From the NCBI RefSeq assembly GCF_052425735.1, contig NC_135769.1, forward strand, positions 12,090,001 through 12,154,000: a DNA stretch of 64,000 bases. Direction: 5' to 3'. Below, one piece after another: positions 6,201 to 62,809 of this stretch (positions are counted from its first letter, which is position 1; the number at the start of each line of letters is the position of its first letter). The position numbers and the translations under genes are program-made. The notes beneath the pieces are model-generated. The model had not been told where the DNA came from and did not search any database. It saw only the letters and a list, made by a program, of their open reading frames with translations. This DNA comes from Oculina patagonica. Its lineage: Eukaryota.

Positions 6201-9200
6201 CAAACTTCATATGTCTCATTTATATATTGTGGTTCATTTTTACCCTCGGCACAAGAAAATAGAAAGGAATTTAAAAAGAATAGTCAAGCTTTAATTTTTG
6301 TACCCTTTTCATACCAAAAGCAAGACTTTTCAAGAAGCTCCAATAAATGATATGTCCCGGTTTTCAAGGACATACTGCATTACTAGTCTCTCTCAATAAT
6401 AATTATTATTATAACTATAGAAAATGGATTTATGTTTATTTTTTAGACTATTTACCATTTGGCAATAGGGAATCAGTAATGAAAACAACAGATTTCAAGG
6501 ACTTTCAATACCAAATTTCACTTTTCAAAGCCTCATATTCTGGGACCTACAAAGCTACACGGTACATGTTAGTAACAACACAATTGTTTTAACCTTACCA
6601 GGAATCTGTGGTTGAAGCTGACTTTTAAATTTACATTTTCAGGGCAACAATATCTCCTTAAAAAGCAACCAATTTTTCGATTGAAAGCAACAGTTTGTAA
6701 CATTTGTAACACTGTGAATGTAACATTAAACAAAATAGCAAACAATCATATAATTTGTGTTCACTTGTAAGATACCACAGAATAATCACACACCGTGTGT
6801 CCAAAACAAAAACAAAGCAAAATGTAAAAAATCATTGGTGGCCACAAATTCCATTTCCACTGATTTTCTTTCTTCCTTATAATTTTTATCTTCATTTTCA
6901 CTTTTCACACTATTTTTTCAGCTCATCAGCCATAAATAATCAGATTCTTTCAAACTGTCACTTTTTGTGAAGGCGCAACAAGTTAAACAAAAGGAACAGA
7001 TCGATCAGACTTCGTTAGAAGCTCGTCATTACCATTTTCAGCTGTACTTAGTTGACAATGAATTGTTTATTCCTCGTTAGCACTCTAAACTGCCCACTAA
7101 TGACTAGTCATTTATGATTCAAACAAAACTGGCTGAATACCCTTCATTTTCTACACTTTTAATCCTTAACACCCAACGATAAACCTTTCAGTCTGTGGAT
7201 GAAATCCAAGTGTGTGAAAATTCAATTGAAAGCTACTGAGCAGTACTTTAATGTGTGACTGTTTATTATGTTGTACAAAAGTGGTTCTACTCAGATGAGA
7301 CCCTACGATGTGTGGTGATTAAATAAAACAATGGTGCAGTAATCTCTTGGTCATCAATCGCCTATAATTAAAAATTCAACAACACTAAAATAAAATATGT
7401 CTGTAGTCAAAGAAAAAGAGAGCATTTCATATATCAGTTACAGGGCCCTTCAAGTCATGTTTCTCCCAGGTGAGATTTTGTTGTCATTTTGGGAGGAATA
7501 ACACAACGTTACCTAAGATATATAACAAACCTCCAGATCTAACAAACAAAGCTTGAAGAACCAGTAATTTCACCAGTAAAAACAATGACAAAATTTTGTC
7601 ACATACAGCGCATTAATATATAATAAGTATCTGACATAATGGACAGAATTTTCAGAAACAAGCAGGTTTTCTTTTAAACCACTTTGCACTGTAGAACTTT
7701 TATGCATGCAAACAACTTGTAAAAATTCAATGATACATTACGCAAGCCATGGTTTTAGGATTTGACATGGGAGTCAAACATAATCAAGTACAAGGTGTGA
7801 CTATAGCATTGTTACCAGCTGGAGATCTCAAGTTTTTTTTGTTTGTTTGGGTTTTTTTTGGTTGGAAGATTTAATGTTCTTTGGTTTGTCAGGCATGCAA
7901 TGGTTTTAAACTTAACTTTTCTGGAGAAGGCTTCAGTTGGTAGACCCTTCAATGGTTTTCAGCACCATCTTGACAGGGAGTAAACACCACTAAATTACAG
8001 GATATGTATGGGATTTAGACTGACTTTGAAACTCTGTACAAGTAACTCTGATCAAATTTGTTACATTTTCAATTTTGTAACTCTTTTTAGGAAAACAGCT
8101 ATGCCATTCATGAGCCTAAAGATTAGATTACTTTTGACAGCAACTTTAATTATATAACATGTTCTTTACAGCTGTTATTAATAGCTTATTCTCTATTTTT
8201 CTGGTCAAGTAAATTACTGGGCATGACTCAACCTGCAAAGAAAGTCCTGTCTGATAGCCTGGGGCTAGTGGATTTTCCTGGCGGGGTAGTCAATTTTATC
8301 CATTAATTGCTCAATGCATGGGTAAGTAACATTGGCAGATGCCTCCGGGGTAGCACATAACGGTAAGCTGGAAAATCCATTTTATTTGCACCCTGATGAC
8401 TGCTGTCAAACAGATAAATTTTCCAAGTTATAGAGGTTCAAAAGACTCCCGGCCTGTCCAATCGATGAAAATCGATCATCGGAAACCAATCGATATAATC
8501 AATATAATCGATAAACATCAATCGATTAATATCGATTGGTTCCATTAATCGATAAAAATCGATACTCACAATTCACGTCCTCTTAATTGTATCGATTTTC
8601 ATCGATTTTATCGATTATTATCGGTTATGATAAATAAATGAACCATTTATCAATTCTTGCAACATTTGTAATGCGATACGTTACGCATCCTTTTACTAAG
8701 TTAGTCAAATCGAAGTTCTGCGAGTCAAACAAAGCACGAAATGAACGTACTAATAATAGAGGCTATTGTGAAGGGCTACCACGAGTGCCCATTCTGATGG
8801 AATTTAAATCGCCTTTTCATGATTAAACAAAATAAAAAGAGCTAGCAACGTCCAAGAGTGTTGTAATTTTGATAGAGTTCCCGGTAGAGTTGGATACCAG
8901 TGAAAGCTCCTGCGAACCTGTGATACTAAGCTTGGAGTAAAGTCAGTCTATACGTGGAAAAAGCGGGAAATGGCCGGGTCTCTTTTTAATTGAAGAAGTC
9001 GGTAATTTCAGAAAACGTTGTTTAACAAATCCGCGTCTGTTCACATCAGAGATTATGGAGGGCTATTTAGAGGGTATTGTCCGCAAATCACGGGTTTCAA
9101 CTGATTAAACATTTCGAAGAGAGTTTTGAACACACTTTCAATCAAGTGTTTCGTAATTTTTACACATTTAGATGAGAATCAGCAATTGCACAACAGATCA

Positions 9201-12200
9201 CTTTTTCGGAAGAGGAAAAAATACAAAAGGTTAGACTCAATTGCCAATGGACGATTTCCGATATCCGATTTCGATTTCCGATATCAATCAATTAATTGCT
9301 ATCGATTATTATCGATTACAATCGATTTTATCGATTATCGAATTTCATTGATTGGGCACGCCGGGAAAAGACTTAAGTCAATCAAAATCATATACATTTA
9401 CATATGAGTAAGTACCACAGAGAAAGCTCTGGCAAGTTCTAATCTGGTTGTCTGTGACAAGTAGATTTTCCTGCCAAGCAAGTATCTTTTTATGTTCATT
9501 TGCCGATGGGTGGCATACCCAGGCAAGTCATCTGCCAACTAATTCTTTAAAAAAAGATGCAACTGGCTATGCAACTAGCATGCAACTGCCACAGCCAAAC
9601 AAAATTTGAGAGCTGCCCCTGGAATTATAGTTCTTTTTGAGAAAAACTTGTTTAGATTGCTTGCAAGATGGCAATCAAGGTAAATGAACATCCAACAATG
9701 TCAAGTACAGAGAAATACAACATAACAAATGGCATACAACTCACTAAATGCAATTTCTCAACAAACCTCCCAAACAATCTTGATTATTTTTGAATGCCTA
9801 ACAAACAAAGAAATGCAACAAAAATCAAAGAATTAGATGCCAAACAAAGAGGGAAAGACATCGAAATTTGATCCAACAATAATAATTTATCAGTGGCAAA
9901 GGCGTGGCATGTTTGACTGTGATAAAAATATTATTTAAACTACATTTCAAGCTGCTACCAAAAAAATGTTCAGCATTTTGGCAAAAGATCTGCAATTACC
10001 TTCCATATTTTAGTTTTTCTTGAAAGACAACTTCTTTAAACAAGAGAATTTTAAATGCAGTTTCAATTATTTTTCACATTTCTTCAATCTAGTAAGAATG
10101 AATTAATTTAACTGAGCTGACTGCATGTTGAGTAATACTATTACAATAACAATATTACTGTATTCTGTATTGCTTCAAGCAGTAAAAAACACTTTGTATT
10201 GAAAACTGAACTTGAAAGTAATGACACAAGATGTTTAAAGGATTAAACTCATTTGGTTTCATTTTTTGGTCTCATTTGGTTTCTTCTTTCAATAACACCA
10301 ACATTTTGTAGAAATACATGCATAATGCCATAAAAAATTAAATTTACTGTTTAGCTCAGTAGTCTAACTCAATATGTACAGGTTATGCACAGACACTGCA
10401 ATTAAATTTCAGGTAATAACTGCCATCACAGAGGCCAAAGAAAAATAAACTGCATTGTTACTTTTCATTTGAATTTCAAAAATTATAATCTGGTCATTGA
10501 GAGGTTGAAAAATGTTTAAAATGTAGATACATATATTAAGATATTTCAATTGTAACTTGAATTTTTCCTACATTGTATTTTTGGCCCAATAAAATACTTT
10601 TTGCATACATGTAGATCTGCATGTGAAAACCCATCACAAGTATGAGTTATGGTGAGTTGAAATTTGCAAGGTATCTGCATGAACAAAAACAAGCAAGCCC
10701 CAGAAAATTACTGACATACCAACATGTACTTTAGCCTTTTGAGAACACTGACCTTCAAGAACATGTTTCGACAAGAACATCCACTTTGATTTAAAAAGAT
10801 AACACAACATAAACCCATCTATAAACAAATTAGATTACGATCAAATTTATCAAGGTATAAATTTCAATTTCCTTGACAGGAGGAAATGAGTCCCTGCCCT
10901 TTACATCCCAGGAAACAATTCTTGATAAAGAAAAAATATTGAGTATCTATACATAAAAAGGATTGGTACACACTATTAAAAATACACATACAAGATTCCT
11001 AAAATACCTTTTAAAACTTGACTTGGTAGATCATTGGAAGCAGTTTGTTCCTCCCAGCCATTTTGCTTGGGTAAAGAACTAGGTGAATCACTTAGCGGGG
11101 ATGAGCTCTGATGACTGTGGTTGCTCCCAGTGCTTGGAGGTCTTGGTGGTGGTGACTTGCCAATTTTGCTTCCAATATCCTGAAAATGTCGCAGTGGGAG
11201 GGTGTTTCCATTTCGAACAGGGCCTGCAGGTATCGAGCATGTCATGCTAGACAAGTTGCTAACAGTTGGATTTCTCTGTCCAAATGTAAAAGTGCTATTG
11301 GAAATAGCGCTGCTTGGTTTCATTGGAAGGCTGCGCCCACCTGATGCTAATGGTAACCGAGAAACGCTGTTTGCTGGCACGACACCAACTTTAGTGTTTA
11401 AGGTTACACTAGCACCAGATGGATGAACTATTGCGGCTTGAAGGGAAGGGTATTTGTTAGTAGAATATGACTGGCTGGTTGGTGGGCCTAGACGCTTGTT
11501 TACGGCAGAAAGAGCTTCAATGGGGTTGGGCCGAACAGGAGTACTTGAGTTGACTGGACGGCTTGGCATCGCAGTACTGCTTGAATGTGATGCGTAGCTA
11601 CTAGCATTGGATAAACCGCGAAATGATGCATCTGGTCGGCTTGTGCTGGAATTATTTCGGTCGGCTGGTGTCATGACACTTCCAAGTTTTGAGATCACAG
11701 AGCACAGTTTTTCTGTCTCCACTGAAAATTTCAAATCACTGTGAGCAACTGGAAGGACATTGTACTTGAGGCTTAATAAATTTTGAATTCTTGAGCTAAG
11801 TTGTCTCTTGCTGTACAACAATCCCATGTCACTGCCATTCTTTAGTACATGTCTGGTAAAACCATAATTGTGTTGAAGAATCTTCTGCATCAGCCTGAGG
11901 TCTTTATTTTGTTTGGACAAAAGCTTGTGTTTAAAATGTACAAGAGCTTTCAATTCTGTTAACAAGACGTTCTCCCTCTGTTTTACAGCCTTAACAAGCA
12001 TCTCTGACGACTTTCTTATTTCAGATGCAATGTTTTCCTCCTTTTCTTGTAAACCTTTGGCGGCTTTTTCGACTTCACGGATCGAATCTGTCAAAGGCTG
12101 CGCTTGTTCGTACAACCGGTTCAGCTGTCCTCTTAGATAATCTTTATAACTAACTGCCGCTTCCTTAATGAATTGATATTTATGATCTTTATGTTCAAGC

Positions 12201-12805
12201 AGTTGACAATCCCGGCAAGTCAATTTCTCACAGTTTGCACAGAACAGTTTTAAGGACTCCTGTGGATGGGTGCTACAGAAAATGGGTTTCACATCGGCGG
12301 ACTCGGAGTTTTCCAAATACTCGGCCTCTGATTGAATCTTGTGGTCTTTCGTTACACGAACTCTCTGATGGGCAGAAACACAAGCATCGCAGAGCCAGTC
12401 ACTGCAGTTCAAACAAAACGACGAAGCAGGACTGTTGTCTTCACAAGAAGTACAGAACCGCTTGACATTTTCTTGTTTTCTCTGCAATTTTCCAATGTTT
12501 TCTAACACGAACTGATTATCCAGGAAGCCATGGACTCCCTTCGGAGGAACTAAAAACTCTTGACCACAATTCGGACATTTCAGCCTTGGAATCGAGTTCG
12601 TCGATGCACTAGCTGTTGTCGAAGGGACCTTTTCTTGCTGCTGTTCAGCAAAACGCTCTTCCAAGCACTTCAAACAGAAAGAGTGAAGGCAAGGCAGAAG
12701 CTTTGGGCTTGTGTCCACCGGCGGCTTTTTACACAAACCACACAACATATAGACGGATTCCTCCTCTAGATCTTCAGCACTGCCAGTAGCGCCGCCTTCG
12801 CTCAT
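273..12805 (-). CDS. TRIM33: TIF1-family E3 ligase/chromatin reader (TRIM24/TRIM33-like), 8 coding exons, ~917 aa
   Basis: Exons 12805-11008, 6062-5785, 4364-4198, 3825-3767, 3660-3590, 2473-2399, 1195-1043 and 425-273 all have GT-AG junctions and consistent phases (total 2754 nt). Domains: RING ([20 protein letters not shown]), B-box1 ([22 protein letters not shown]), B-box2 ([21 protein letters not shown]), coiled coil, PHD ([35 protein letters not shown]) and bromodomain ([29 protein letters not shown]). It is probably co-orthologous to vertebrate TRIM24/28/33, so the symbol is approximate. Confidence 0.93.
628..680 (-). ncRNA. Minimal type I hammerhead ribozyme motif (Penelope-like)
   Basis: Minus strand reads ACT-CTGATGA-A-GGTGA-acagatg-TCACC-GAA-AATT-T-AGT: conserved core, 5-bp stem II, palindromic loopless stem III, ACT/AGT stem I. 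Confidence 0.55.
892..943 (+). ncRNA. Second, slightly degenerate minimal hammerhead motif
   Basis: ACT-CTGATGA-A-GGTGA-acagatg-TCATC-GAAATTT-AGT; one G-U pair in stem II and one A fewer in stem III. Confidence 0.45.
1581..1866. mobile_element. Abundant MITE-like repeat, AGAGCG.TTTTCA family (diverged copy)
   Basis: Homologous to 50789-51073, 55524-55801 and 42308-42725 (AACCAATCAAAACTC, GGTTTTGGTTTTACTTCTGATT, TGAAAACTGCTCTA end). Confidence 0.75.
2639..3129. mobile_element. Non-autonomous TIR element with 7-bp TSD (P-like CA..TG termini)
   Basis: TIR CAGAAACCCATAAGAGTTAAAACGTGTAAC / GTTACACGTTTCAACCCTTATGGCTTTCTG, flanked by TCTAAAT on both sides. Confidence 0.85.
8448..9365. mobile_element. 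Non-autonomous DNA transposon with 8-bp TSD and ATCGAT-rich subterminal arrays (hAT-like)
   Basis: TIR CCCGGCCTGTCCAATC / GATTGGGCACGCCGGG; perfect TSD AAAAGACT at 8440-8447 and 9366-9373. Confidence 0.9.
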
Positions 12806-26868: not shown

Positions 26869-27327
26869 ATAAGCTGTTGATAATTTCAGATCATTTTATT
26901 AAGTTTTTAGATCATTTTATTTATTTTCAGTCGTATCTTAAGCTTTGGCTACCTGTGTATTAACCCATTGGCGCCTGTGCCGGCCGTAGCCGGCCGTGCG
27001 AAAACCACCCCCAAAATACAATGTATGTAATCCTATGAAGAGGACAAGCTACAAAAATAACAAATAAACAACAATTTATCTGGAAGAAACGTGCGACTCT
27101 GTGATTTACGTCGTGTAACGGCCAAGCACTTACACACAAACAAACCGTTGCTAGCATCATTAGAGCTAGATCGGGATCAGTTTGATGACAGATCTGATTG
27201 GAGCAGGCAGTTATTGTGGTCACCAAATAAATAAATGTTAAGTGATTAACGAATGCATAATTTGCCCGCCACCGCACACGGCGATTCAGGGAGGTGGCGA
27301 TTGAGTTTGCGGAACAATCTCGGAAAA

Positions 27328-27882
27328 ATGCAAGCATGTTTATGGAAAACCACCAAAAAATGGGAAAAGAGCTTCAACTTTATCTCAGGAAAGAAACATT
27401 ATTCTGTCGAACTTGTTCGCTTTAAGCGATGGTGTGGCGAAGAAGTTCGCATATTTACGAACGGATTGCAAATACATCACGCAACATTCAAGCGACTGAA
27501 TGGCTTAGCTGTGTGCAGTAGAAGCGAACAACACTCGTGGGAATTCGACGGCCGTTCATTTTTACTAATGATTGTTCCTGGAGTTTGGTCTATGACAGAG
27601 TATCATTTACTAATCGATGGTTTGCAGATCGAAAGGGATCTAACTCCGTCGGAGTTATGGAGACGCCGCGGATGGGTGCTCGTTTATTTTGGACTTATCG
27701 AAGTGTTGATTGGAATTTTATTGGAATCAATAAGGTACTTTGAGGACACCGTACCGTACTTTGTGTTATGGGAACTCCTAGGACGAGTTTTGTTAATCTT
27801 TGGCTTGTTAAAGATTGTGGAGGGTTTAACATCACATGTGGCGAGATATTCTAATCGTTACGGACCTGTTTACACAGTATAA
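27328..27882 (+). CDS. Intronless uncharacterised membrane protein, FAIM-like beta domain plus 2 TM (paralog A, 184 aa)
   Basis: The ORF track starts at 27253, but alignment to paralog B (MQACLWKTT vs MPSCCKTT) and the AAAATG context favour ATG 27328. It shares EExRIxxNG, WExDGxSFLL, LxI[DN]G and WRRRGW with paralog B, followed by two hydrophobic segments. Confidence 0.8.
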   Translation: MQACLWKTTKKWEKSFNFISGKKHYSVELVRFKRWCGEEVRIFTNGLQIHHATFKRLNGLAVCSRSEQHSWEFDGRSFLLMIVPGVWSMTEYHLLIDGLQIERDLTPSELWRRRGWVLVYFGLIEVLIGILLESIRYFEDTVPYFVLWELLGRVLLIFGLLKIVEGLTSHVARYSNRYGPVYTV

Positions 27883-29734
27883 GAAAACTCCAAACCGCAA
27901 GTATTACTTATTCAAGCTGGGGAGAGAGAGAGAGAGTAGGAAACAAGATCTCGACGCTTCACATATTGTAAACTTCCGGCACTCTCGCCACGAGTTTAGC
28001 CCAGAAACTAAACAGCGTAACGTTTCGCTAAATTATGGTAATATTTAAAATGTTGTCTGGAAGACATATTGAAAATATGGAAAGATTGTTTACATTATCA
28101 TGTCGAGGAAAATGTCAGTACGGTCCGGAGGCGAAAATGGACCAAAAAACAACAAATAAAAAAGGCTGGACTTTAACACTTGATCGCGATCATTGAAGTT
28201 TTATTTTCAAATTTTCCACACTCAATTTGTGCCCAGTCATTTAATTTGGACACGCTATAAAGCGCATGCAAATACAGCGCCGTGTTTTGATGTTCCGTGA
28301 ACTGAATGAAATATGTAAGCAATAATTTGAGTTGCGTGCAGGGAGAAAAAAAGAAAACAAACATTTTTTCAAAAACCAGTTAAAAAAACGAGCGCGTTTA
28401 CAATCTTTAGATAAGCATGTGTTTTTTTCCTGCCCGCATCTCTTGAAAAACCATGCTTAATTGTTTCTTTTCCAATATTCACCTGTCACGGATCCACGCT
28501 TTTTACAACTCCATTCATATTGTACTGTATTTATACCAGCCCCGCCTTTTACAAACGGCTTGTAAGATCACAATAAAAACCACCTTTACTTCTACCACTG
28601 TCTGAAAATCGCTGCTAAATCATATCTGAAGAATATTAAATCTCTGCTACATTTAACCGCGCCCGATGAATTATTCATGTAAACATTCAAGGTAACTATA
28701 TTATTTCCATAATAATCTGTAAAACGGGTGACTGCGCGGCCCGTGCCCGCTCGCACAATTTTTCTACATCAACTGTTCTTAACATAAAAAACACTTTAAT
28801 CCCTCTTTTGCGACATTCTTGACCTTTTAGAACTCGCTTTGGATGGATTACCCAAATTTATGACAAATGGACTCATCTTTTGAAAATTTTGGTCACGTGA
28901 TTAAACATGGTATTACATTTATTTTGCATTATTATTAGTGCTTGCTGCGCAAATTTTCGCATATTTTAAAAATATTTTCTTCTTGTTTTTTGATTTTTGA
29001 AAACCATGCCTAACATTTTTACTGACACCGGAATGATATTAGTTTAGTTTTCTAATCGCTCGTCAAGGGTAGCCTCGGAGTCTGCGAGGTCTCTGATAAT
29101 TATCAAAAGCGAATATAATGCGTTAAAAAAGATGGAAGGTCAAGCAAGTGAAATTTAGACAAATTGCCCAAATTCAATTTCTATTTTTATTTTTGTTGTT
29201 TAGAAAAATATTAGTGGACATATATTGCGATTTTTATTCGCTTGAAAAGAAATAAGAAACTGTAGCAGTTTTTCGTATTGATGCACAAACGGCGAACTAA
29301 TATTCTTAGATTCTTGGATATTTGGATTAAAATATTGAACACACTCTTTTCGCCTGCTTTTCGCACAAAATATTACTCTAACTTTAATTAGCCAATCAGC
29401 ACTCGAGTCTTCTGTCGTATTGACACTATGCAAATTAACACGAATACATTGCGAGGAAAGATGTCACGCAATAATATTGTGACATGTTTGCATTTAGCAA
29501 ACGATTTTTGGCAAGAGAGTATCATCGATCACCATTTATTCCTTGGTTTGCGGATAATTCATCCTAATTACAGCTTAACTTGCCATTGGCTTGAAGAAAA
29601 CCCGCAGATAAAGGCAAAGCGACTAAGCAAAGGGTCTCAAAAGACCTCTTAATCCGAAATTTATTAGAAAGTTTTAGGCGAAGATCGATATTGTCGCTGT
29701 GAACTTCGCTAGCTGACTGCCCCGAACCGTCGCG

Positions 29735-30307
29735 ATGCCTTCGTGCTGTAAAACGACTTGTACTTGGGCGCAAAATCTGAAGGTTGGTCCAGAATATCGA
29801 CAGTACACGGTCCAGCTAATCCGAGAAATTGGTTGCTTCTGTGAAGAATACCGTATCTACGTAAACGGACACGAACTGGATCACCACGGGCTGACTTACA
29901 ATCCCTGCAGCCCTCTTTGTTTTGGTAGCGGGCAATACGAGTGGGAACAAGATGGCCATTCTTTCCTGCTTATTTACAACTCTCTGTCGTGGACGAACTA
30001 CTTTGGGGGATTTCGGCTTTTTATAAACGGAACAGATGTGAATACTGGGCGAGAATTTTCGTCGTTTTGGCGGCGACGCGGTTGGCAAGTGATTTTCGCT
30101 GGCCTTGTCATGTTGTTGCTGGGCACGACTCTATCACTGATATTCCACTATGCCTTGTCCAAGCCAAGATCTTTGATAGCAGTTGGTTATGCTCTCGTTG
30201 TTACTGGTGTGCTTTATATTTTCTTGGGGCTTATTCCAATTTTGCGATACCGAAAACCACGATACGATAGATCTGCCGCCATGGAGTACGCAACGAACAC
30301 AGTTTGA
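29735..30307 (+). CDS. Intronless uncharacterised membrane protein, FAIM-like beta domain plus 2 TM (paralog B, 190 aa)
   Basis: Open ORF collinear with 27328-27882 over its whole length. TM segments are VIFAGLVMLLLGTTLSLIF and LIAVGYALVVTGVLYIFLGLIPIL. Confidence 0.85.
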   Translation: MPSCCKTTCTWAQNLKVGPEYRQYTVQLIREIGCFCEEYRIYVNGHELDHHGLTYNPCSPLCFGSGQYEWEQDGHSFLLIYNSLSWTNYFGGFRLFINGTDVNTGREFSSFWRRRGWQVIFAGLVMLLLGTTLSLIFHYALSKPRSLIAVGYALVVTGVLYIFLGLIPILRYRKPRYDRSAAMEYATNTV

Positions 30308-31501
30308 TACAAGCATGGATTTCATCTGTGACTTGCGGTGTAGATATGGCAGTTTGATTACAATTTTTACCTTTACGATCACCAAGTATTTGCTTGAAAT
30401 GTGATCAAGGCTATTCAACAAGGTTCTAGAAGGTTTATAACTGCAATAGATCGAACAGTAATTCCCTTCAAGAACTTATTTGTGTACATATAAGAATTGA
30501 AAAGTGTACAATTCACATCACAGTTACTATAATTTCTGTAGAACGCTCGCGCTATCGTTTAGAAAATTATTCATAGTGGGTGCATATTAGCTGACAATAA
30601 AAGTTGTTTCCTTGCTGTGACACTTGGCAATTAACATTGATAGATCGTGAACCTGACCAACATTTATGATTAAAAGCTACTACAAATCAGCTGTCAGATT
30701 GAGAAGTTATTAAATGTAATTGAAAAAATCAAAACAATTCTTTTGAGCTCTTTTCTTAGTGTTTGTGTCGAAGTATTCTCAAGTTGTCATGTCAAATAAT
30801 TTCTTTTAACTGCTGCAGTTTTTTAAAATTTTAAACAGCACAACACTAGCCGTGTTTAATTGAAGTGGTTTTGAGGCTTACCTGTCAGTGACCAATGCCT
30901 TATTTAAACATTAATATTTTATTTTGGATTAATGAGAAGTGATGGATAGCTCACTTTCGGAAGAAGCAGCCAGAATTTGTTTTGGTAGCATAAAATCAAA
31001 CAAGACAAAACTGTCTGCTATTTCTGGCTATTTATCATGCTTTTTAAAAATGTTAATATTGTTTTGAGTGTATTATAGGAGTGTATAGTGTATAGGAGAT
31101 TCGCCTTTATTTAAAGCTGGATTTAAATATGTTAGAACTGGCGATGTAATGTTTAGTATTTAAACTCATTTTTTTTGCCATATGCATGGCAAAGCTTAGA
31201 TGGTCTTATCTTTACTTAATTGTATATTTGAAAGGGATCATTTCTTAAGTTTTTCCAAGCAGCATAGTTTATGAAAAGCCCAATGTATGCAACTTTTTTT
31301 GATTTTCAGTAATGGGAAATCTTTTTGTAGTTTAATGATTTTATTCTTGGGGGTCTTTACTTTTGATAATTTTTGAAGCTAATAATTCAAGCAAGGAGCA
31401 TATGTGATTAAATATAGGATTACCTGTCACATGGCTGACGTTTATTGATAATCTTTGACAAGGCAGGTGACATCTCTAGAACTGGTATTTAAATTGTCTG
31501 T

Positions 31502-35522: not shown

Positions 35523-38500
35523 TCATCTGTAGTACCAGTGAAAGAATCCTTGAGTTATTACAAACATAAGCAGTAAGAGCCAGTCTTTGAACTGAAGTGT
35601 AGCAAGGTCGTCCTGATGAGAGGAATAATGTCGACGCAGGTCGCTTCTAATCGCCCTCATCTGTTGCACGCATTCCTTCTGTAAATCCTTCAGCGGTTGA
35701 AACACCTTCTCTAGACTCGCCACGTCAATGTTTTCCTTGATGCTCGAATCATCGTCATCATCCTCGACACTACTCGAGTGCTCGGCTTCGGGATCGGGCG
35801 TCGACGTACCCGAGCGGTCCATCGAGCTCCGTCGTGATCCCTTCGCTTGACCACTGCCCCGTGATCGACCCGACGAGGGACGTTTTCGTTTTGATATGGG
35901 TTTCTTGATCTGATCTGGTGTTTGGACACTAAGTAGGCTGGTTGTTCTAACCATTGGCGCTTTAAGTCTGTACTGGGTCTTGATGATACCTTCATACTCA
36001 TACTCCTTTAGGTCTGTCATCGGGTCCCAAGGTCGAACGCTAAAAAATAAATCAAACCAATATAAAAGTGTTGAAAGGATGTATGGGAAGCAGGGATGGC
36101 GCAGTGATAAGAGTGCTCGCCTCCCACCAGTGTGGCGTGGGTTCGATTCCGGTGTCATATGTGGGTTGAGTTTGTTGTTGGTTCTCGCGTTGCTCCGAGG
36201 GTTGCTTCTCCGAGGGTTGCTTCTCTGGTTTTCCTCCCTCTTGAAAAACTAACATTTTCAAATTCCAATTCGATTTGGATAGGGGACCCGCATGAAAAGC
36301 AGCTGGGGCTTTTTTTTTCTAGAATTGCTGGGCTAATTGTGACTATTTGCCGGCCAGTGTCGCTAATCACTCGTCAAGTAAAGGTTTTGGACTGAAATGA
36401 TAACTTTTGGGATTGCGAGAATAACATTGTTCAAGGGATGGGAAGGTGGGTAAGACTAACCGAAGAGGAGGCGGCGTGGCCAAGTGGTTAGGGCGCTGGA
36501 CTTGGATTTGTGTTCGGTGGTAACGAAATCAACTCCTCCACACTTTGACCATATAGCCAGCTGGTCAGCCTCCTACCAGATGGAATTTTTTAACAAGTTT
36601 CTATTTATCTACATGTTTGTTTGTTTATTTATTCAAGGGCTACATTGTAGACTACTGGGACACCAGTAATTGTGTTTACCCTGTAAAGTTAATTTTTTTA
36701 ACCGCATCCGATACAAGAAAAGATGGTGAATATAAATGACAGTTTTACTAGTCACTTACTCTCTGTATTTGTAAAGCCATCTATTGATAGCATTAGGAGC
36801 TGCTGGATCTCGTTCAAACAGTTTAGGAATCCATTCCACCCCTGCTTCTCTCCTCTCCCTGTGACCTTTCCGCTGAGCTTCTTCAAGAATAAACTTCTCA
36901 TTTGTGGCCTTTTCCTGAAGAAAATCACAAGGACACAAGTATTCTTAGGTAAAATAATAAAGTAGAAGCTTGGATCAAAAACTGTTTCGTTTTGAAGCGC
37001 CGTTTCTCGCTTACTTTTGTCGTCAAATACAATCAATTATATCTGGACTGCAATCGTTGCACGTTCTTAATATCATATCAAAAAATTAATCATATATAGT
37101 ACATCAGCTCCCCAAAATGCCCATTAGGCCTCAGACAGCATCCACCTTTCTTTGTATAATAGATTTTATTAGACTCAGCTTTGTTTTTCGAGCTCGACTA
37201 CCAAAAAGAGTGACAATGAGGATCTGCAGACAAGGATTGTTCTCCTACCTGGTCATTTATCCTGATGGCATCTCCGACATGGGTCCATAACCTGTAAATT
37301 AGATTGTGACATTTGGTGAATGTTACACACGGTGGCGTACAATGCAGTACAGGATTGTCGAACTCTTTTTAACATAATTTCGTGAAGATCAATTTCAATT
37401 TGAAGTACGATTTCTGTGAGAGTCGGAGAAAGGTTTGGGGGCGGGGGGAGAGGAGGGGCTTATAACAGGGGTGGAAGAATAGGACTCTAATTACAATCGG
37501 GAACTTGCGTGTATAAGCGGGAAGGGGGGGGGGGGGTTATTATAATCGGGAGTTGATTGTATCTTAATTTAAAAAGTGGTGAGCTTGCATGCCAAAACTG
37601 CACAACAGTATAATCTTGAAAGGTAACCATTCAGTTGCGTATTCTTCGAACAGTTTTCCACTTGACAGATTAAAGCACAACATGAATGAGGTTATTTTAT
37701 TTCTGTGAGAGCGTTAGTAAGTTAAAAAGAAAAGGTTGGAGGGGAGCGGGTTTTAACGGGGGTGGATGTGTAGGACTCTAACTACTGATAAACAGCAACT
37801 TACATGTATAAGCAGGAGGGGATTATTATAACCGGGAGTTTACTGTATTTATTGTTTATTGCATTGTCCTTGTTGAAAGTTAACTTAGAAGTATTTCACT
37901 TGCACGGCATTCAGTTGCGTATTCTTCAAACACTTGACAGGTTATAAGGAGAAGCCACGAGCCAAGCGGCCCACACTGCCGGAGCTTATCCCGGTTTCCG
38001 TAGCATTAAGCGGCTAGGAATATTTCTACTCCCCCCTGAATGGGATGCTAGTCCATTGCAGGGTTCCCCCCCAGCATTATGTCGCCGGTACCCATTTATA
38101 CACCTGGGTGGAGAGAGGCACTTTGAGAGTAAAGTGTCTTGCCCAAGAACACAACACAAGTGACCCCGGCCGGGGCTTGAACTCGAACCGCTCGATCCGG
38201 AGTCCGGCGCTCTAACCATTAGGCCACCGCGCCTCCCATTGACAGATTATAACACTACATAAATACAGTCAACTCTCTCTTAAGGACACCTTTCTAAGAC
38301 GGACAGTTGGAGCCCGCCCGACGGTGTCCGTCTTAGAGAACACGTTATGTCACACTACTTACTTCTCAGACTCGAATTCTCCCTGAGTGCTGTACTCCAC
38401 CAAGTGTCTTGGAAGTCTCTGCTGTCTGATTTCAGGAGTTGGATCCCAAAACAGTTCAGGCAGAGGTTCGATCTCCTAAAAGAAATGCAGATTTGAATAT

Positions 38501-61459: not shown

Positions 61460-61662
61460 NNNNNNNNNNNNNNNNNNNNNNNNNNNNNNNNNNNNNNNNN
61501 NNNNNNNNNNNNNNNNNNNNNNNNNNNNNNNNNNNNNNNNNNNNNNNNNNNNNNNNNNNNNNNNNNNNNNNNNNNNNNNNNNNNNNNNNNNNNNNNNNNN
61601 NNNNNNNNNNNNNNNNNNNNNNNNNNNNNNNNNNNNNNNNNNNNNNNNNNNNNNNNNNNNNN
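61460..61662. other. Assembly gap
   Basis: Run of N. Confidence 0.99.
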
Positions 61663-62671: not shown

Positions 62672-62809
62672 NNNNNNNNNNNNNNNNNNNNNNNNNNNNN
62701 NNNNNNNNNNNNNNNNNNNNNNNNNNNNNNNNNNNNNNNNNNNNNNNNNNNNNNNNNNNNNNNNNNNNNNNNNNNNNNNNNNNNNNNNNNNNNNNNNNNN
62801 NNNNNNNNN
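62672..62809. other. Assembly gap with low-quality homopolymer flank
   Basis: Run of N followed by poly-T/C/A tracts. Confidence 0.99.

Follow-up and report, generated by a model that had tools for sequence, protein, structure and literature searches.

The window analysed here is a stretch of 64,000 nucleotides from the genome of the coral Oculina patagonica (assembly GCF_052425735.1, contig NC_135769.1, positions 12,090,001–12,154,000 of the forward strand), and all positions below are counted from its first letter unless stated otherwise. It contains two short neighbouring open reading frames, here called ORF1 and ORF2, and the question raised by the locus is what kind of protein they encode. 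On balance we consider it probable that they are two real, expressed and constrained paralogues of a hexacorallian family of hairpin membrane proteins, with both termini in the cytosol and a single head domain of the type found in FAIM1 (Fas apoptotic inhibitory molecule), and that they function as a membrane-tethered binding module.

The gene pair and its family

A preliminary description of this DNA had reported two single-exon reading frames on the same strand, of 184 and 190 aa and about 1.9 kb apart, with approximately 30% identity by eye and a list of shared motifs. All of these observations were reproduced. The coordinates and strands agree (Table 1); 1,852 bp separate the two frames, and their products are 31% identical over 169 residues according to BLASTP (E 2e-24). 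The motifs KTTxxW, YxVxLxR, EExRIxxNG, WExDGxSFLL, LxI[DN]G and WRRRGW are present in both proteins, as are tails ending in TV, and each protein has two hydrophobic segments (the highest Kyte-Doolittle means over 19 residues are given in Table 1). The coding sequence (CDS) is a single exon in every orthologue seen; the contig data described below leave room for an intron in the 5′ untranslated region (UTR). No third copy was found in the window using tblastn, and a profile search of the whole 529-Mb assembly found ORF1 and ORF2 as the sole copies.

The start of ORF1 needs some comment. There is an in-frame ATG upstream at 27253, which would give an ORF of 209 aa (27253–27882, + strand). The ATG at 27328 is the better start, because all orthologues begin there (MQxYLWKTT), because nucleotide similarity to the orthologous loci starts at 27327–27343, and because 27279/27280 is where the contigs of two runs start, in one case after adapter letters.

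Coverage was taken from the contigs of four runs from four studies. The runs are presumed to be RNA, and the contigs carry neither strand nor exact ends. They cover 26923/27279–28559 and 29458/29500–31300 at depths of 6–83 (6–58 in the first of these units), and in the spacer between them (28640–29470) the depth is approximately 0–2.5 in three of the four runs; in the fourth (X2) the contig continues to 28953, after which the depth drops. This pattern fits two transcription units. The UTRs of the second unit also have similarity to the contig of a close relative, over 29521–31030. Transcription had been put forward as a check on the preliminary description, and both genes are indeed covered in a transcript-like pattern. 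The loose contig ends at 26923–27017 were considered as a 5′-UTR splice site, which was rejected. The sequence at 26880–27017 has a short tttcagatcattttatt-like motif in tandem, together with a GC-rich segment (26960–27017), and at both of these the contigs of several runs branch into different continuations. The appearance is that of a dispersed repeat close upstream of ORF1, not of a splice site.

The ratio of nonsynonymous to synonymous substitution rates (dN/dS, Nei-Gojobori) was calculated for each gene; more distant pairs are saturated at synonymous sites. Against the closest available orthologue it is 0.13 for ORF1 (dS 1.0) and 0.08 for ORF2 (dS 0.69). Within ORF2 the constraint is unevenly distributed, with a value of 0.02 for the head domain alone and 0.21 for the helices plus tail. 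Five of the six variants listed inside the two CDSs are synonymous, and nucleotide similarity to distant orthologous loci ends at the ends of the CDSs (27327–27900 for ORF1; from 29735 to 30289–30307 for ORF2). The proposal that both copies are under selection is therefore upheld, the selection being purifying and neither ratio near 1. Pseudogenes and chance ORFs are ruled out by the conservation, the dN/dS values and the coverage.

The family to which the pair belongs is small. ORF2 has 57 homologues (E 1e-29 to 1e-115, 49–89% identity), and the orthologues of ORF1 are 41–91% identical (E 7e-85 to 2.5e-4). An exhaustive phmmer search with ORF1 against 1.8 billion representatives returned only 18 clusters (at 50% identity), and a profile search of 5.8 billion clusters with the family returned 80. 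All the named members are "uncharacterized" or "predicted" proteins of Acropora, Montipora or Nematostella, among them LOC5521574 (Nematostella), LOC114959595/6 and LOC114964623 (both Acropora millepora). ORF1 and ORF2 share with this anthozoan family a collinear similarity over their full length, including invariant W11, R30, G74, F77, L95 and WRRRG, and the two helices. A literature search for eight LOC, UniProt or RefSeq identifiers of the family found no paper in the library searched, and searches of the FAIM-related literature surfaced no membrane-bound FAIM1-like animal family. The family thus appears, as the preliminary description suggested, to be undescribed.

In a maximum-likelihood tree the members fall into two clades, each with support of 100/100: the A clade, to which ORF1 belongs, and the B clade, which includes ORF2. 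Both clades are present in Acropora, Montipora and the Oculina patagonica genome, and the A/B duplication is therefore old. The arrangement of an A gene followed by a B gene on the same strand, with a spacer of 1.8 kb, recurs in at least two other assemblies (7619–8170 and 10001–10579 of locus L009; 1200–1754 and 3532–4110 of locus L012). In L009 the pair is preceded by a RING/B-box TRIM exon, as it is in the window: the window has at 10976–12805 (− strand) an open exon of 609 aa of the TRIM/TIF1 type, which encodes a RING and two B-boxes, and L009 has an orthologous B-box ORF of 597 aa upstream of the pair. The neighbourhood is therefore conserved. In Acropora the A type seems to be located on another scaffold than the adjacent B copies, and a third assembly (L006:10001–18161) has six intronless members on the same strand in 8 kb, one A type followed by five B-related copies, the last two of which (169–170 aa) have shortened N-termini. 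This array is a lineage-specific expansion.

Predicted placement at the membrane

The preliminary description placed two transmembrane helices after WRRRGW, with both termini in the cytosol and no signal peptide. The features of the whole family are consistent with this. K+R were counted in 58 full-length members over the 15 residues leading up to WRRRG, the loop between the helices, and the 15 residues that follow helix 2, with means of 3.7, 1.6 and 3.2; the corresponding net charges before, between and after the helices are +2.4, +0.5 and +2.0, and A-clade loops are net acidic. The N-termini of ORF1 and ORF2 are polar, with no hydrophobic stretch or signal peptide. A start of the form MGC[RHY]K[ST]T occurs in 13 of the 58 members, including named B types of Acropora and Montipora, and the other B members mostly have CC or C at positions 3–5. 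Such an MGC start fits N-myristoylation followed by palmitoylation, which is feasible solely in the cytosol, and dual acylation of this kind is found in MGC proteins such as the Src-family kinases and G-alpha i/o. The Acroporidae B types would match them, with the myristoylation consensus followed by a palmitoylatable Cys. The coral pair itself starts with MPSCC and MQAC, in which there is no Gly2, so that at most S-palmitoylation would be possible.

On the basis of the charge distribution, the lack of a hydrophobic N-terminus and the MGC/CC N-termini of the B type, we infer a hairpin with both its N- and C-terminus inside, presenting the head on the cytosolic face. The suggestion that the N-terminal cysteines may be palmitoylated can be retained for ORF2, in which C4 is conserved in at least 90% of sequences. 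It finds no support from ORF1, where Cys4 (MQAC) is not conserved, most of the A clade starting with MQxYLWK. The only Cys conserved across the family is C62, and therefore no conserved disulfide or Cys4 zinc site is indicated. The opposite topology, with the N-terminus outside and a disulfide-rich ectodomain, is ruled out by the charge distribution, the MGC starts and this single conserved Cys.

The two clades differ in several respects. In the A clade the helices carry conserved charges, with E133, R153 and E165 invariant and E125, E149 and K162 present in at least 90% of 15 sequences. Such charges point to salt bridges within the membrane, to a partner helix or to the binding of ions. The A clade ends in GPVYTV. 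The B-clade helices are hydrophobic and Gly/Thr-rich, with no conserved charges, and the clade is characterised by a highly constrained head with a conserved YNPCSPLC loop, a juxtamembrane stretch RYRKPRY, and an end of the form (S/T)N(A/T/I)V. A C-terminal Val is found in 46 of the 58 members; that it might act as a PDZ ligand or as an endoplasmic reticulum export signal is speculation. The idea that the two paralogues, with one domain each, together reconstitute a FAIM of two domains was examined by predicting a complex of ORF2 and ORF1. This scored 0.00, with poorly folded chains (predicted local distance difference test, pLDDT, 55–58), and weighs neither for nor against binding.

Fold of the head domain and rival explanations

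AlphaFold2 was run on full-length ORF2 and generated a confident model (pLDDT 82, predicted template modelling score 0.75; pLDDT 81 for the head alone), which consists of six main strands followed by helices at residues 108–140 and 145–171. The head was then compared with 48,161 PDB chains using VIA-align. The first match is the C-terminal domain (CTD) of FAIM (2kw1, Z 8.2, 85 of 89 residues) and the second is its N-terminal domain (NTD; 3mx7, Z 7.5, root mean square deviation (rmsd) 3.0 Å, 84 of 90 residues), while the third scores only Z 4.9. Over the 84–85 aligned residues the rmsd for the FAIM alignments is 3.0–4.3 Å. Foldseek matches the head to FAIM with a probability of 0.98–0.99 and a template modelling score (TM-score) of 0.55–0.56 by target. 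In a library of Swiss-Prot structures the top matches are FAIM1 of human, cow and rat (probability 0.97–0.99). In the clusters of the AlphaFold database (AFDB) and in the ESM Atlas, clusters bearing the Pfam FAIM1 domain (PF06905) come next after the family's own cluster, and the rows that follow it include bacterial FAIM1 or DUF3592/FAIM1 proteins, alongside unnamed ones. The combination of AlphaFold and Foldseek that had been proposed as a check on a FAIM-like head thus yields a confident model and, in Swiss-Prot, FAIM1 at the head of the search. The head domain very probably has a FAIM-type fold.

Profile comparison points in the same direction, less strongly. An alignment of 35 family head domains was compared with 35 animal FAIM1 proteins using hhalign, with pairwise E-values that are not calibrated against a database. 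The head alignment matches whole FAIM1 with a probability of 65.5% (score 34.0), and the FAIM CTD with 87.7% (score 36) over 81 columns, which is the whole domain. For comparison, the FAIM NTD against the FAIM CTD gives 94.5% (score 43), and reversed controls give 0.3–0.4% (score 14). The A-clade and B-clade domains match each other at 99.5%. Three anchors align with FAIM, namely the strand-1 Trp, the turn with VNG and the final turn with I/V-D-G, and they make up the FAIM strand pattern that the preliminary description had named. We consider it likely that the common fold reflects common descent, a conclusion that is supported mainly by predicted structure, the sequence evidence being marginal.

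The genome also retains, elsewhere, a canonical two-domain FAIM1 gene (G000:C7:33199965-33203945, L001 and L002), with at least two coding exons (profile positions 1–109 and 122–171). At G000:C6:34115012-34115302 (L003) the FAIM1 profile has a further weak match, which with 20 bits (E 0.13) stays below the cut-off. It is interrupted by two TAA stops and could be noise or a decayed FAIM-like fragment.

Several results weigh against a relationship with FAIM, and some of them favour the alternative that the small β-sandwich head converged on the FAIM arrangement, the proteins being an orphan anthozoan membrane family with a function unrelated to that of FAIM1. This is where the earlier suggestion of a FAIM-like head stands only in part: the fold agrees, with FAIM domains in the top two places, and the Pfam match is missing. 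Using PF06905 (cut-off 22 bits), ORF1 and ORF2 have no row at E up to 10, and there is none for the 35 family head domains or six further members, although the same model scores 155 bits on exon 1 of the real FAIM1 gene of this genome. The family profile retrieves no FAIM chain from the PDB sequences, giving only noise from the transmembrane helices (E ≥ 0.3), and language-model features (ESM Atlas, named clusters) produced no named relative or usable match. With hhalign, the B clade alone matches the FAIM CTD at only 30% (score 25) and the A clade alone at 9% (score 21). The Foldseek E-values are weak (0.06–0.4), identity in the structural alignments is 13–14%, and according to VIA-align a Z of 7–8 can reflect a common arrangement and is common as the best score for models that have no true relatives, though here it lies about 3 units above the next match. 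Against convergence, both FAIM domains rank first, with that gap and with nearly complete coverage; four independent libraries return FAIM1-domain proteins; and the three turn and core motifs align in register, with a profile score near that of FAIM NTD against FAIM CTD. Convergence therefore seems to us unlikely. Sub-threshold Pfam matches to Asp-Al_Ex, FA_desaturase, DUF308, holin-like families and DUF7139 were rejected as identities, being mostly compositional matches to the transmembrane helices.

Two further explanations were weighed. The hairpin might be the working part, with the proteins oligomerising into a small channel or pore, or acting as a membrane-remodelling hairpin, and with the β head as a regulatory cap, and this would apply especially to the A type, in view of the conserved charges within both of its helices (E125, E133, E149, R153, K162 and E165) and its lack of conserved N-terminal cysteines. 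The sub-threshold holin-like and small membrane matches (Phage_holin_3_6, E 0.002–0.014) point the same way, but all of them are below the gathering score and look compositional, the B-clade helices have no conserved charges, and the constraint in the B type is strongest on the head and not on the helices. We regard this explanation as quite improbable. The genes might alternatively be of bacterial origin, that is, a horizontally transferred membrane protein with a single FAIM domain, and not a derivative of the animal FAIM1 gene. They are intronless and have a narrow taxonomic range; the nearest shapes after the family are bacterial clusters of 158–195 aa, some with PF06905, and some of these alignments reach into the helical part; and the AFDB matches include bacterial FAIM1/DUF3592 proteins. 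However, no bacterial relative was found at E up to 0.001 (phmmer, 1.8 billion representatives). The family profile matches animal FAIM1 in register, the synteny with the TRIM gene is stable, and the A/B split is deep within Anthozoa. Such a transfer is very improbable.

Possible role and neighbouring features

Having weighed these alternatives, we return to the reading of the pair as membrane-tethered FAIM-type proteins. Approximately 110 N-terminal residues would fold as a single FAIM1-type β-sandwich, probably a remote homologue of the FAIM1 domains, which the WRRRGW motif and the hairpin of two helices would hold at the cytosolic face of the membrane. The B type probably has an additional anchor in the acylation of its N-terminus (CC in ORF2, MGC in Acroporidae). 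The likeliest action would be that of a membrane-tethered protein-binding module, the equivalent at the membrane of soluble FAIM1, which might bind proteins that are stressed, ubiquitinated or involved in death signalling. According to PMC7056718, FAIM1 has a protective effect on cells under heat and oxidative stress and is drawn to ubiquitinated proteins; the same paper describes it as unrelated to any other protein. A role for the coral pair in apoptosis or stress would be by analogy with this. It receives no encouragement from the heat-shock element, no three-unit copy of which occurs in the 64 kb (1.3 expected by chance).

A comparison with known systems shows how far the analogy extends. 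FAIM1 (PF06905; 3MX7 for the NTD, 2KW1/2KD2 for the CTD) has the β-sandwich fold in common with the coral pair, and is predicted to be cytosolic, as is the coral head. However, FAIM1 is a soluble protein of about 180 aa with two tandem domains, encoded by a gene with introns and found across animals, whereas the coral proteins have one domain (residues 1–110), WRRRGW and a hairpin of two helices, a tail that is basic and Tyr-rich, and a CDS without introns; their named members are all hexacorallian. The loop at residues 48–66 of the coral family (YNPCSPLC) has no counterpart in FAIM1. A similar architecture probably occurs in bacteria, in DUF3592/FAIM1 fusions and small proteins of Bacillota and Actinomycetota, where a single FAIM-like β domain appears to be joined to membrane or helical segments (158–321 aa). 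A search of bacterial genomes with the FAIM1 alignment gave no confirmed relative, and the comparison is by shape only, with TM-scores of 0.59–0.66 by query and an rmsd of 2.5–3.1. These bacterial proteins belong to a different domain of life and have no detectable sequence similarity to the coral family; nor did DUF3592 (PF12158) give a row for ORF1, ORF2, the 35 head domains or the six further members. A FAIM1 domain fused to a membrane module (DUF3592) is already annotated in bacteria, and the coral architecture is not unprecedented. Despite their names, FAIM2/Lifeguard (TMBIM2) and FAIM3/TOSO share only name and membrane location with the coral pair. FAIM2 is described as a multi-pass membrane protein of the TMBIM (Lifeguard) family and FAIM3 as an Ig-domain IgM Fc receptor, and both are absent from the results of all our homology and structure searches.

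A bolder version of this proposal would make the pair the first eukaryotic FAIM-domain family outside FAIM1, an anthozoan invention that pins one FAIM domain to the membrane. The A and B proteins could then stand guard over cell survival or proteostasis close to the membrane, for instance at death receptors or, when heat stress sets in, at the symbiosome or plasma membrane. A pair of this kind would bear directly on coral bleaching and offer a natural way of finding out what the FAIM fold binds. We regard this version as doubtful. Apart from it, FAIM1 is ancient and protective and its mechanism is obscure, and a strongly constrained family with one membrane-placed FAIM-type domain would amount to a separation-of-function variant made by nature. 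Such a variant would mean that the FAIM domain can work singly, and would point to membranes as a site of action. Being short, without introns and also found in Nematostella, the genes are easily tagged, knocked out and tested under heat or oxidative stress, both central to cnidarian cell death and bleaching. The definition of the family and the assignment of the fold are solid, and if the match proved to be an analogy, this would still be a well-delimited orphan family of membrane proteins of corals and anemones.

Table 1. Features of the ORF1/ORF2 locus, in window positions. Hydropathy is the highest 19-residue Kyte-Doolittle mean.
Feature	Position	Strand	Remarks
ORF1 CDS, A-clade paralogue	27328..27882	+	184 aa plus stop (ATG 27328, stop 27880–27882); orthologues 66–91% identical; dN/dS 0.13; similarity to orthologous loci confined to 27327–27900
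ORF1 N-terminal β domain (residues 1–110)	27328..27657	+	probable FAIM fold by homology to ORF2; A against B domain 99.5% (hhalign)
ORF1 juxtamembrane WRRRGW	27658..27675	+	R112–R114 and W116 invariant in A clade
ORF1 predicted transmembrane helix 1 (residues 117–135)	27676..27732	+	hydropathy 2.24; E133 invariant, E125 near-invariant
ORF1 predicted transmembrane helix 2 (residues 144–167)	27757..27828	+	hydropathy 1.97; R153, E165 invariant; E149, K162 near-invariant
ORF2 CDS, B-clade paralogue	29735..30307	+	190 aa plus stop; 57 homologues, 49–89% identical; dN/dS 0.08
ORF2 N-terminal FAIM-fold β domain (residues 1–111)	29735..30067	+	AlphaFold2 pLDDT 81–82; Z 8.2/7.5; dN/dS 0.02
ORF2 juxtamembrane WRRRGW	30068..30085	+	W112, R113, R114, G116 invariant in 26 sequences
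ORF2 predicted transmembrane helix 1 (residues 118–141)	30086..30157	+	hydropathy 2.45; AlphaFold2 helix 108–140
ORF2 predicted transmembrane helix 2 (residues 147–170)	30173..30244	+	hydropathy 2.32; AlphaFold2 helix 145–171
ORF2 basic, Tyr-rich tail (RYRKPRY...NTV)	30245..30304	+	conserved in B clade
Approximate transcription unit 1	27279..28559	+	run contigs; strand taken from ORF1; in two runs contigs extend back as far as 26923 and 26967
Approximate transcription unit 2, 3′ end not fixed	29500..31281	+	contigs from 29458/29500 to 31281–31300

A scan of 20–40 kb of the window against Rfam gave no match, and a scan for promoters and terminators of bacterial type, of no relevance to a eukaryote, remained at chance level. 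Two runs of N (61460–61662 and 62672–62809) are assembly gaps or masked stretches. On the − strand, at 35523–36158, there is an ORF of 211 aa starting with ATG, for which no Pfam match was found. The middle of its product is rich in Ser, Arg and Asp, and the C-terminal part contains a hydrophobic stretch resembling a tail anchor; the ORF may represent an exon or a further short gene without introns.

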